Of a stretch of DNA of 28,489 nt, positions 1,315-28,244 are shown piece after piece. The position numbers were made by a program, and so were the translations under genes. Under the pieces are notes generated by a model, which was given only the letters and a program-made list of their open reading frames with translations, did no database searches and had not been told where the DNA came from. Within the stretch, counting starts at the first letter, position 1. Each line of letters opens with the position of its first letter. The stretch lies in the sequence record NC_028787.1; one strand, written 5' to 3'.

Positions 1315-3286
1315 TTATCACCTCCAAATCTATTGGATTTATAGTTTTTAAAGTTTTATTGAACTCTTTTTCGTATTCTTTTGCCTCTTTTTCATTCGAA
1401 AACATTTTACCAACCCAAATTCCGTTTTCATAATGGTATTTCTGTTTTGTGTTTAATGGACTGATTATTTTTTGAATGTCATTAAGTAGTCCAACAATTC
1501 CATTCTCATTAAGTCTTAGATTAAAGATTGTTCTAAACATTAATTTTTGACTAACATTTACTCTAACTATTTCTCCTTTGCTTAAACGATTTGCAATGTA
1601 ATCAATTACCTTTTCTGCTATTTCTTCATTTAATTTGAATCCTCTGCTTTTTACCATTTTTTCATTAGCATCATTTAACACATAAATCCCATTTCCAATT
1701 ACTTCTGCTTTACCTTCTCCTTCTAATTTAAACTGACCAAGTTTATCTCCTACTAACTCATCTGGTAATTCTTTATTTGTTATAATACTATCTGTTAGGT
1801 ATGAGATAGCATTACGATCAGAGTTAACTATGTAAGTTCTGCCTAACGCTGTTATCATCCCGGCATAAATCACATTCTGGAATTTAGCGTTGAATAATAA
1901 TCTTTCACCAAATTTTCCATAACTTGAATTCAAGATTAATTTATAGACTTTTTCAAGGGGGTTTTTCTCCTTTTTTAAGTGTAACCTTTTTTCATAAAGA
2001 TCTTTTATAACTTGTTCAAAGATGTGTTTTCTCACAATGCTAAATTTAATTGTAGTTATTTTTCCTTTTACTTTAATGTTAGGAGATAATTCTTTATTAT
2101 TCTCTGTGAGTTCAAAATCAAATAAGCTTGTGCAGAAGTTTGCAATTCTTAATAATTTGTGATTAGTTTTTGATGATACTAATTTATCATTCTGTTCAAA
2201 ACATCCATAATAAATGTACAGATTTTTGGCGTCCTCATTCTCAATAGTACCTTCAAATAGCGGATTCTCATTAGGTACAAATTCTTCTTCAATACCTTCA
2301 TACTGAAGGACAGGTAGTTTTGTCATGAAGAACGGGTACATAGAATTGATGTCATACTTTTTTACATTACTAAAGATTCCTAAATAATTGCTATCAAATA
2401 ATCCACCTTTGTACAATTTTAATAACGCTAAACTTAGTTCAGGGTCATAGGGTAATCCTTTAATTGCATCCCCGTTTTTTAAGAAATAGATGAATTTGTC
2501 TTCTGGAGTATTATTAATTATGTAGTTAATACTATTAGATGGCAATGTTCTGAGACCTGTAAATGGGAATAAGTAATCTTTAATGATAGCTAATTGGTAT
2601 GTAGCTATAGTATCAAGTTTATTATACTTTGTTAGATCTTCAACAGTTTTAGGGTCATGAAAATCAAGAGAACCAAAGTCTGCTCTTTTCTGTTTGTCTT
2701 CTTTCCACTCTTTAAGTTGGTCATCTGTTAAATAACTAAGAGGAAATTTTTGTTTAATTAGGTCATAATACCTTGTATAGGCATTGTATAAAGAGTCATT
2801 ATAATACTGCATTAAATTAAAGAACAACATCTTTCTACTTTGCGTAACTAATGTATAAGTGTTCTTATGTTTGAAGATTTCTAATTTATCTGTTGTAAAA
2901 GCTCCATCATGTAAGAATCTAAGTAATCTCTTTTTTGCGTTTTCTTTCTGAAGGATTGGTGAAAACAAAACTGGTACATCATAATCTCCATAGAAGAAAT
3001 TAATGTCACCAAATAATGATAGATTTATGTCATTAACTGTGTCAACTACTTGATAATCGTATTCATGACCATCATAAACACCAATTAAGATTGATTTACC
3101 ATTTGTTTCTATGTCAAATGCTTTAACAATTGTTTTTTCGTTATTTTCCTTTTCTTTGAAAGTTTTTGTATTCACTTCACATAGGGAAAAAAGACCAAGT
3201 AATGTTTTTTTAAGATACACATTTGGTTTTGCAATTAAATTAGCTTCTTTCTCAACTTTTATCGTCTTATCTTTTGTTGTCTGCAT
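1298..3286 (-). CDS. polB: Protein-primed family B DNA polymerase (662 aa)
   Basis: ExoI AFDIET, ExoII GDYDV, ExoIII YNKLD, motif A YDINSMYP, motif B KLILNSSYGKFG, motif C variant YLTDS; long A-B insert (TPR1 position); linear genome with ITRs. Confidence 0.96.
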   Translation of the reverse strand: MQTTKDKTIKVEKEANLIAKPNVYLKKTLLGLFSLCEVNTKTFKEKENNEKTIVKAFDIETNGKSILIGVYDGHEYDYQVVDTVNDINLSLFGDINFFYGDYDVPVLFSPILQKENAKKRLLRFLHDGAFTTDKLEIFKHKNTYTLVTQSRKMLFFNLMQYYNDSLYNAYTRYYDLIKQKFPLSYLTDDQLKEWKEDKQKRADFGSLDFHDPKTVEDLTKYNKLDTIATYQLAIIKDYLFPFTGLRTLPSNSINYIINNTPEDKFIYFLKNGDAIKGLPYDPELSLALLKLYKGGLFDSNYLGIFSNVKKYDINSMYPFFMTKLPVLQYEGIEEEFVPNENPLFEGTIENEDAKNLYIYYGCFEQNDKLVSSKTNHKLLRIANFCTSLFDFELTENNKELSPNIKVKGKITTIKFSIVRKHIFEQVIKDLYEKRLHLKKEKNPLEKVYKLILNSSYGKFGERLLFNAKFQNVIYAGMITALGRTYIVNSDRNAISYLTDSIITNKELPDELVGDKLGQFKLEGEGKAEVIGNGIYVLNDANEKMVKSRGFKLNEEIAEKVIDYIANRLSKGEIVRVNVSQKLMFRTIFNLRLNENGIVGLLNDIQKIISPLNTKQKYHYENGIWVGKMFSNEKEAKEYEKEFNKTLKTINPIDLEVIIGGKA

Positions 3287-19408: not shown

Positions 19409-19698
19409 TAATTATGGCTATGCTTGGAGTGAGTCTAGACATTTACGATGTAATGAAAGGAATTGTGCTTTTAATAGTTACTAGTGGATTTAGTTATGCA
19501 ATTCTTGAACAATTTGATTCCTCAAAACTATGTTATTTTGCACGTCTTATACAATCTGCAGTGATCTTTCTATTATCATTCATTTTTGACTCAGCATTTG
19601 GAATAGTAATTGCTCTAATAGAAGCAGTAATAGGCTTTGGAGACTACATAGCTTACCAAGAACCAAGTTTAGCATTCTTAGACCCAAATAAAGCCTAA
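19405..19698 (+). CDS. 3-TM membrane protein (97 aa)
   Basis: Three hydrophobic segments; C-terminal IAY..P...DP shared with the next gene. Confidence 0.8.
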   Translation: MIIMAMLGVSLDIYDVMKGIVLLIVTSGFSYAILEQFDSSKLCYFARLIQSAVIFLLSFIFDSAFGIVIALIEAVIGFGDYIAYQEPSLAFLDPNKA

Positions 19699-19711
19699 TA
19701 AGGTGGTAAAA

Positions 19712-20059
19712 ATGACTTATGTTGTACCTGACATAACTCCTTATGTTAATTTTAGTGAAAGTGGAATAGTTTCAATCTTGATTGGAGTAGCAATGACAGT
19801 ATTAAGTAACGCGTTTGCTTACCTGTTGGTAAAAGCCTTTAACTTAAAATGTTATTATGGGCGTTTCTTAGGTGGTGTAATTATCTTAGCTCTTACCATG
19901 CTACTTAGTCTATCAAGCAATGGTCTCAAAAGGTATAGGGGTATGGTACTGTTTGGGATTGGAGAAATGCTTGTAGGCGGATTAGACATTATCTCTTATG
20001 CAGAAAACATTAGTCAGCCAATCCTAATTCCTGACCCAACTTGTTCAAGTGAAATGTAA
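19712..20059 (+). CDS. 3-TM membrane protein (115 aa)
   Basis: AGGTGG RBS; ends ISYAENISQPILIPDP. Confidence 0.8.
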   Translation: MTYVVPDITPYVNFSESGIVSILIGVAMTVLSNAFAYLLVKAFNLKCYYGRFLGGVIILALTMLLSLSSNGLKRYRGMVLFGIGEMLVGGLDIISYAENISQPILIPDPTCSSEM

Positions 20060-20175
20060 TGAACCCCTACCTATTTTCAATTGTTTTATTAATAGGTTTA
20101 GCAATAGAAGTAGCACTTTATGTAATTTTGTATACTTCTTCTAACAACCCATACAACGTATTCAATCAGCTTTAA
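20059..20175 (+). CDS. Small single-pass membrane protein (38 aa), not in ORF track
   Basis: TAATG coupling; MNPYLFSIVLLIGLAIEVALYVILYTSSNNPYNVFNQL. Confidence 0.55.
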   Translation: MNPYLFSIVLLIGLAIEVALYVILYTSSNNPYNVFNQL

Positions 20176-20197
20176 ATAATTTCTTAAGGTGATAAAC

Positions 20198-20431
20198 ATG
20201 TCAGAATTTGCAGGAATGCTTCAAAACTTCTTCTATTTACTAACTGCTTTAGCTCTTGGTACTGTAGGCTATAGTGTTTTTGAAAGATACATGGATTCAA
20301 AAGACAAGAAAGAAGTATTAAAATCGATTGCGGATACACATAACACTGCAGTAACTTCTATGATGAGTGCTCATAGTGTTAAACAGGTTAAAGAAGCTAC
20401 CAAAGAAGAAGATAAACAAGCTTCTAAGTGA
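20198..20431 (+). CDS. Candidate pyramid-forming egress protein, PVAP/P98-like (77 aa)
   Basis: N-terminal TM plus soluble helices; ungapped match to the recalled SIRV2 P98 (G.L..FF-18x-Y-10x-K.I-7x-VT). Own TATA and GGTGA RBS. Confidence 0.5.
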   Translation: MSEFAGMLQNFFYLLTALALGTVGYSVFERYMDSKDKKEVLKSIADTHNTAVTSMMSAHSVKQVKEATKEEDKQASK

Positions 20432-20435
20432 TAAA

Positions 20436-20711
20436 ATGCCAAACTTTTTTTGTCATAAATTAATTTCTGTTTTTTCTCCTACACAAATGGTTCATTTATG
20501 TTTAATAAATGATGATGCACTCACTCCTGACGCTGAAGGAATCCTATTAACAAAGCCTCCTTACTATTTCTTTGCTTCAACCAAAGATTGTAAATTGAAA
20601 TTGCCTCTACTTCTTTACCCATTTCATCTTTGTTTAATTCCATTTAATCAATCTGTAAAAATTACGATAAAAAGAGGCAAAGAATACCACGATCTTACCC
20701 TGACTTCTTAG
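20436..20711 (+). CDS. Hypothetical beta-rich protein (91 aa)
   Basis: ATG at 20436 after the previous stop; the longer ORF-track start overlaps the previous gene. Confidence 0.7.
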   Translation: MPNFFCHKLISVFSPTQMVHLCLINDDALTPDAEGILLTKPPYYFFASTKDCKLKLPLLLYPFHLCLIPFNQSVKITIKRGKEYHDLTLTS

Positions 20712-28082: not shown

Positions 28083-28244
28083 ATGGATTTAAACTTACTT
28101 ATTGTTGTAGGTGTGATCGTTGGAAATGAGTTACTATTATACATTTTTGATCATCTACATAATCGTAAGATGGCTCATAAACGATTTGAGAAAGCAATTA
28201 AAATTGATAATCAAATTGTTGAGAAAAATAGAAAGAAAGTGTAA
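28083..28244 (+). CDS. Small membrane protein with PVAP/P98-like motif (53 aa), not in ORF track
   Basis: TM segment followed by HLHNRKMAHKRFEKAI, versus recalled P98 HLYNEKQSNENFAKAI. Confidence 0.55.
   Translation: MDLNLLIVVGVIVGNELLLYIFDHLHNRKMAHKRFEKAIKIDNQIVEKNRKKV

Follow-up and report, generated by a model that had tools for sequence, protein, structure and literature searches.

Comparison of protein families suggests that gp47 of Acidianus bottle-shaped virus 3 (ABV3) is plausibly a distant and shortened protein of the PVAP type, the type represented by SIRV2 P98 and STIV1 C92. The resemblance between the gp47 family and PVAP is specific, reciprocal and family-wide, but it is also weak and centred on the membrane helix. 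That gp47 and PVAP descend from one ancestor we judge to be slightly more likely than not, and a PVAP-like role for gp47 in egress from the host may be regarded as possible, at somewhat less than even odds. Judged in the same way, gp47 is the best PVAP-like candidate in these ampullavirus genomes.

The gp47 gene and its relatives

The DNA analysed here is the complete 28,489-bp genome of ABV3 (KP282674/NC_028787; 100% identity), which has 70-nt terminal inverted repeats at its ends. An earlier sequence-only reading of this DNA had singled out an open reading frame that proves to be genuine: it is gp47 (Table 1), and the peptide cited in that reading (FAGMLQ...SMMS) makes up residues 4-57 of the product. 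Relatives detected with gp47 by tblastn are confined to ampullaviruses, most of whose proteins have no known homologues according to the ICTV profile. They include ABV2 gp29 (35% identity) and ABV ORF71, an internal start of ORF103 (32%); metagenomic relatives were added by word search (three), by exhaustive HMMER (four) and by a pattern scan (26 contigs). It is a core ampullavirus gene, with a fixed position in all the contigs sampled. All relatives begin with MSEF, MTEF, MAEF or something similar, which supports the ATG assigned to gp47 and, in ABV, favours ORF71 over ORF103. At the ABV locus (positions 2905-3216) two starts are annotated for the homologue, ORF103 and ORF71(in). Conserved TATA-like and Shine-Dalgarno-like motifs lie directly upstream of the internal start, where all relatives begin, and this placement of the motifs, taken with the starts of the relatives, makes ORF71 the likely product.

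Table 1. Coordinates in the ABV3 genome of gp47, its upstream motifs, its neighbours and gp66
Feature	Position	Strand	Remarks
gp44, gp45, gp46	19414-20175	+	three membrane-protein genes directly upstream of gp47
TATA-like TTTAAA	20171-20176	+	-27 to -22 from the gp47 ATG; overlaps the gp46 stop codon
Shine-Dalgarno-like GGTGA	20188-20192	+	10-6 nt ahead of the gp47 ATG
gp47 CDS	20198-20431	+	ATG at 20198, 77 codons, TGA at 20429-20431; 'hypothetical protein' in RefSeq
91-aa gene	20436-20711	+	unannotated; four conserved Cys (FYC...LC...PC...LC); begins 5 nt past the gp47 stop
gp48	20521-20643	-	40-aa ORF; RefSeq annotation over the 91-aa gene
gp66	28083-28244	+	53-aa ORF near the right end of the genome

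The product has 77 residues in ABV3 and 80-84 in most members of the family, the range being 67-84 in most members. The family alignment shows two length variants. The ABV, ABV2 and P0128 forms are without 11 residues that read THNTAVTSMMS in ABV3, and several metagenomic members have an insertion of 20-25 residues (...TVTVVHEVS...) ahead of the terminal polar tail. In the family alignment F11, Y25, R30 and H59 are invariant, and H48 is nearly so. A Pfam scan of gp47 gave no match, which is uninformative because P98 itself is without a Pfam family. The gp47 profile also matched a eukaryotic-looking repeat protein (P0129, P0130) through the unit 'SIADVHNEVMEIVRSAHSIQSED', present in 5-6 copies; we regard it as fortuitous and magnified by the repetition of the unit.

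The sequence-only reading had further given the gene its own promoter. Both upstream motifs are conserved in position across 24 distinct ampullavirus loci, which renders such a promoter plausible rather than demonstrated. In register at these loci are TTTAAAC at -25 to -19 and TAAGGTGAC at -13 to -5, each position being conserved in 17-23 of the 24. The TTTAAA(C) box is found in 19-23 loci, and lies 2 nt further upstream in ABV3; neighbouring positions are only about 40-50% conserved. GGTGA occurs in 18 of the 24 loci, and in 23 when one-off variants are admitted, against a background of 0.8% of 12-nt windows. The placement of the TATA-like box fits a leaderless transcript that would start at about the ATG. 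The Shine-Dalgarno-like motif could be used only on a longer transcript, and fits read-through from the membrane-protein genes upstream; it may be that both modes are used at gp47.

Two of these upstream genes, gp44 and gp45, precede the gp47 homologue in every contig that reaches that far, and the gp44-gp46 family profiles have no resemblance to PVAP. On the other side of gp47, the unannotated cysteine-containing gene has relatives in the corresponding place, immediately after the gp47 homologue, in 21 other distinct ampullavirus-like sequences, though not in ABV or ABV2. Its best match among the PHROGs is phrog_23223 (E 3e-4), of unknown function. It is probably co-transcribed with gp47, and the gp48 that RefSeq annotates there is probably a mis-call.

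Pairwise and profile comparisons with PVAP

An ungapped alignment of gp47 to SIRV2 P98 had been put forward in the sequence-only reading. Such an alignment does exist, but the string given there as SIRV2 P98 is exactly that of SIRV1 P98 (P0009), from which authentic SIRV2 P98 differs at a few positions. In this register gp47 has 11 identities in 54 positions to SIRV1 P98, at G, L, FF, L, Y, K, I, VT and S, in agreement with the residues listed in that reading. Against SIRV2 P98 the same register gives 10 of 54 identities and a BLOSUM62 sum of 31. When the membrane part and tail of P98 were permuted separately, none of 1000 shuffles reached this sum (mean -28, sd 15), so that the resemblance between gp47 and P98 exceeds composition. 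A direct scan recovered a better ungapped segment, gp47 34-73 with P98 50-89, which pairs KSIADTHNTAVTSM with ESIKDTTTTAINAL at a score of 54 and 11 of 40 identities, a score reached by one shuffle in 1000. This segment was missed by the BLASTP heuristic, which returned no alignment of gp47 with P98 at E <= 100. The ungapped register of the earlier reading is therefore best supported in its first half only, as is also seen when families are compared. The profile alignment pairs gp47 7-38 with P98 9-40, which is that register, and then gp47 39-66 with P98 55-82, and it joins the two by a gap of 14 residues in gp47 after K38, past the membrane helix.

For the profile comparisons we used a PVAP alignment of 123 sequences (SIRV2, STIV C92, SSRV1, SRV and 119 database relatives) and a gp47-family alignment that held 10 sequences at first and 34 later. 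With 10 gp47 sequences hhalign gave a probability of 74% (P 2.8e-5), and 86% (P 5.4e-6) in the reciprocal direction; with 34 sequences the values were 65% (P 6.3e-5) and 79% (P 1.6e-5). A further profile-profile run gave 66.6% (P 5.4e-5) over 60 columns. Addition of 26 metagenomic relatives increased Neff from 2.1 to 2.2 only, and the hhalign probability was not raised. The single P98 sequence scored 20.6 against the gp47 profile and did not surpass the top decoy (20.9), which indicates that the signal requires both profiles, or HMMER. As to the PVAP match that the sequence-only reading had proposed to look for with profiles, what is found is a weak, specific and reciprocal match that lies below the level at which homology is established. 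The companion proposal, a match to SIFV gp43, is not borne out (hhalign probability 0.1%, score 9.3).

The same separation of the two families from other proteins is seen in HMMER rankings. With the gp47 HMM, 51 of 55 PVAPs come before every one of the 2,918 other ORFs in 694 kb. With the PVAP HMM, the first 29 places among the 964 ORFs in 207 kb are taken by 28 of the 29 ORFs of the gp47 family and by a single intruder, ABV3 gp66. The cross-family scores are only 7-14 bits; the separation nonetheless spans the diversity of both families. When 1.84 billion proteins were searched exhaustively by HMMER with this gp47 profile, neither a PVAP at E <= 1e-3 nor an intermediate towards PVAP was retrieved, the matches being ampullavirus relatives and the one eukaryotic repeat protein only. 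In PHROGs, which are clusters built on remote homology, gp47 (phrog_15262) and PVAP (phrog_8367, 'pyramid forming protein') are separate, with no cross-hit at E <= 10.

Specificity of the match and where the signal lies

Hydrophobic and amphipathic helices are a classic source of convergent matches. Column shuffles that preserved the layout did not reach the hhalign score of 30.7 in any of 200 trials (mean 11.5, maximum 21.7), and the reversed PVAP profile scored 15.2 against gp47. All ORFs from 207 kb of ampullavirus DNA were clustered into 42 family profiles and compared with PVAP; the gp47 family scored 32.9, the next family 17.1 and the median was 11.4, with the other ampullavirus membrane-protein families at 13-14 (gp45 family 13.0). 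In the opposite direction, 109 small-protein families clustered from the ORFs of 694 kb of rudivirus, STIV-like, lipothrixvirus and bicaudavirus DNA were compared with the gp47 profile, and PVAP came first at 24.1, by a smaller margin over the next family at 20.1; the PVAP alignment in this comparison was an automatic one with extra N-terminal columns. The SIFV gp43 family, which has the same build of a membrane helix followed by helices, scored 9.3 against gp47 and 10.7 against PVAP. Architecture and composition alone do not, therefore, make the signal between gp47 and PVAP.

Most of that signal comes from one end of the protein. When the tail columns alone were shuffled the score still averaged 21.9, from which about two thirds of the score can be attributed to the membrane and juxtamembrane part. 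Split profiles give a score of 21.7 (P 8e-5) for the heads alone and 14.8 (P 0.018) for the cytoplasmic tails alone, the latter with the register unchanged.

Besides gp47, the orphan gp66 is the only ORF of ABV3 and the related contigs with a resemblance to PVAP or gp43, and the best match of the gp43 HMM in the 207 kb of ampullavirus DNA (8.5 bits, E 0.15) is not gp47. The match of gp66 is to positions 11-45 of the PVAP profile (HMMER 10.5 bits; hhalign probability 70%, P 3.9e-5), and spans the membrane helix and H-L-x-N-x-K-x5-F-x2-A-I, the stretch that is absent from gp47. We considered gp66 as a second PVAP-like gene and rejected it; a search of 5.8 billion proteins returned no homologue, and none of the frames downstream continues it in a PVAP-like manner. 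Its best PHROG is phrog_24211 (E 6e-6), and the PVAP phrog comes second at E 0.11. This ORF is either what remains of a PVAP or a match by chance; in the latter case false positives at such PVAP scores are not very rare.

Signature residues, C-terminal tail and architecture

Forty-two columns of the PVAP alignment are at least 90% conserved, including E-S-I-K-D-T-T and N-M-x-x-L-x-D-V-N-x-L-A. Seven of them (F13, L14, Q37, S59, I60, D62 and T63) are matched by an identical residue in half or more of the gp47 family; a further six are conserved in residue class, and ten fall in the gap or beyond the alignment. The invariant PVAP block N73-M74..L77.D79-V80-N81.L83-A84 has no counterpart in the gp47 family alignment. 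The gp47 family thus does not carry the residue signature of PVAP, and for that reason gp47 is not to be filed as a member of the PVAP family.

The two families have in common a variable polar tail that ends in lysine. It lies outside the aligned region, and as an independent feature it lends further support to the resemblance. Lysine is the terminal residue in 121 of 123 PVAPs and 33 of 34 gp47-family members, compared with 7-8% of decoy ORFs and none of nine gp43-family sequences. A glutamine within the three residues before the terminal lysine is found in 84% of PVAPs, 50% of the gp47 family and 1% of decoy ORFs; examples of such ends are ...NTQAK in P98, ...QTQAK in ABV2 gp29 and ...KQASK in gp47. 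The lysine-terminated tail is a feature recognised in this analysis and is not established as defining PVAP.

In overall layout gp47 consists of an N-terminal hydrophobic helix (residues ~8-28), an amphipathic helix and the polar tail ending in lysine. Its best 19-residue Kyte-Doolittle hydrophobicity is 1.39, the means being 1.67 for the gp47 family and 2.06 for PVAP. AlphaFold2 models gp47 as one helix from residue 2 to 76 (pLDDT 82), and P98 as one long helix from 5 to 90 with a disordered tail (pLDDT 77). The layout of a transmembrane segment followed by helices, which had been proposed for gp47, is accordingly upheld, an N-terminal hydrophobic helix and a remainder modelled as helical being present in gp47 and P98 alike. 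In PVAP, a protein of ~10 kDa, one N-terminal helix crosses the membrane, a signal peptide is lacking and the remainder is helical; gp47 agrees with this in gross architecture and size class, its hydrophobic helix being the putative membrane span. Both monomers being single long helices, comparison of their folds is consistent with relationship and not discriminating. Foldseek found no match for the models in BFVD, and a sequence search of the PDB returned no solved PVAP structure and nothing for gp47.

Possible role of gp47 and alternative explanations

If gp47 acts as PVAP does, its N-terminal helix would anchor it in the cytoplasmic membrane of the host, with the amphipathic C-terminal helix and the polar, lysine-terminated tail presumably facing the cytoplasm. 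Many copies might then associate laterally with each other to form a protein-rich patch in the membrane, and remodelling of the membrane by this patch could open an exit for virions that are already enveloped. Exit of ABV3 through pyramids, as suggested by the sequence-only reading, would be at odds with the published description of ABV as a non-lytic virus that is released without apparent lysis and has a virion envelope of 9 nm. It should be considered that SIRV2 and STIV1 were at first also deemed non-lytic, on the grounds that the turbidity of the culture did not fall.

The chief competitor, to which we would give about one chance in three, is that gp47 has no relationship to PVAP, being some other single-pass membrane protein of the virus such as a small protein of the envelope or of its assembly, and that its likeness to PVAP is convergent, a hydrophobic helix, a heptad-like amphipathic helix and a polar tail having arisen separately in AT-rich viruses of the same hosts. 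The concentration of the signal in the membrane helix is what convergence would lead one to expect, and it is in keeping with this explanation that 35 of the 42 conserved PVAP columns are not common to the gp47 family, that BLASTP, PHROGs and exhaustive HMMER were all empty for PVAP, and that gp47 directly follows three small membrane-protein genes on the same strand, as one would expect of an envelope module in an enveloped virus. The reported non-lytic nature of ABV points the same way, as does the orphan gp66, which shows that a short ORF can reach a comparable PVAP score. However, real decoys alike in architecture and composition fail to produce the match, gp43 scoring 9.3, the other ampullavirus membrane families at most 17 and the 108 other small families at most 20.1, and convergence does not readily account for a separation of ranks that is family-wide in both directions, for tails that on their own align in the same register (P 0.018), or for the lysine-terminated polar tail common to the gp47 family and PVAP.

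It is also conceivable, if unlikely, that gp47 is a true diverged relative of PVAP that performs another membrane-remodelling task and makes no opening pyramids; it might shape or pinch the host membrane for the virion envelope, or serve a non-lytic, budding-like release. The profile evidence for such a relative is the same as that for a PVAP-like egress protein. That one helix and the signature block of PVAP have been lost suggests altered assembly, the 9-nm envelope of ABV and its reported release without apparent lysis would suit the task, and the reported interaction of C92 with CdvB (ESCRT-III) links PVAP to membrane scission rather than lysis. Against this, no such function is known for any PVAP, and the enveloped viruses SIFV and SEV1 do use pyramids. 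Highly improbable in our estimate is a holin-like pore former that would permeabilise the membrane at a critical concentration. The small size of gp47, its single N-terminal membrane helix and charged C-terminal region, and its place in a putative late structural region are what such a protein would have, but no holin family in Pfam or PHROGs was matched at E <= 10, the genome is without a partner lytic enzyme, and ABV is reported to be non-lytic.

Our preferred interpretation of gp47 as a distant PVAP-like protein can be extended to the rather doubtful proposal that ampullaviruses encode a minimal PVAP and leave their hosts via pyramids, so that one superfamily would extend across the Rudiviridae, Turriviridae and Ampullaviridae. 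If this were true, bottle-shaped viruses regarded as 'non-lytic' would be lytic after all, and the minimal module would comprise an F-L membrane helix, an S-I-x-D-T helix and a lysine-terminated tail. A working PVAP relative in gp47 would provide an egress mechanism for ampullaviruses, would imply transfer of a pyramid gene among three virus lineages that are not related, and, as a natural minimal version without a helix and the signature block, would help to work out what PVAP requires in order to assemble. Should the likeness prove convergent, gp47 would be a commonplace small membrane protein of the virus. Expression of the single gene in E. coli with pyramids as the readout has worked earlier for P98, C92 and gp43.

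Comparison with known pyramid proteins and holins

PVAP has been characterised as a membrane-inserting protein of 10 kDa whose transmembrane domain is N-terminal and which lacks a signal sequence, and it builds pyramids in archaea, bacteria and yeast. Its expression is reported to be late and to rise steadily, and at the end of infection the pyramids open and empty cell ghosts are left behind. The pyramid is seven-sided and two-layered, the outer layer being attributed to the membrane helices and the inner to a sheet formed by the C-terminal domains. Reviews and a 2025 survey report PVAP homologues in rudiviruses and STIV-like viruses only, and for C92 an interaction with CdvB, an ESCRT-III protein of the host, has been reported. 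Both PVAP and gp47 are small proteins of Sulfolobales viruses; each has a hydrophobic helix at its N-terminus, lacks a signal peptide and closes with a polar tail whose last residue is lysine, and each is the best cross-family profile match of the other. The positions that they have in common are F-L in the membrane helix, Q past the helix and S-I-x-D-T in the tail. They differ in length, gp47 having 77 residues and most PVAPs 92-99. A stretch of 14 residues in PVAP, approximately one helix (F42, A45, M49, K51-T53), is absent from gp47, and the ABV, ABV2 and P0128 forms lose 11 further residues at the very place of the best match between ABV3 and the tail of PVAP. The invariant NMDTLxDVNxLA block of PVAP is also missing from gp47, the membrane helix of gp47 is less hydrophobic, and Y25, R30, H59 and H48 of the gp47 family have no PVAP counterpart.

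Phage holins, too, are small membrane proteins; they build up in the membrane and bring the infection cycle to its close, but they make pores for an endolysin, and none is encoded in ABV3. SIFV gp43, the protein of the six-sided pyramids of betalipothrixviruses, is of the same architecture class as gp47, with ~90 residues, an N-terminal membrane helix and a helical tail, and likewise belongs to an enveloped virus of the Sulfolobales. It differs in a conserved C-terminus that contains cysteine and has no terminal lysine, and a sequence relationship of gp43 to gp47 or PVAP is undetectable. SIFV and SEV1 are both enveloped viruses that exit via pyramids made of unrelated or unidentified proteins, and reviewers have remarked that an N-terminal membrane domain and a high helical content are maybe the sole common denominator of pyramid proteins. 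SEV1 (Ovaliviridae), an enveloped Sulfolobales virus with a protein-primed polymerase, has a pyramid subunit that was not found by sequence, and it thus sets a precedent for pyramid proteins that lie beyond the reach of homology searches.
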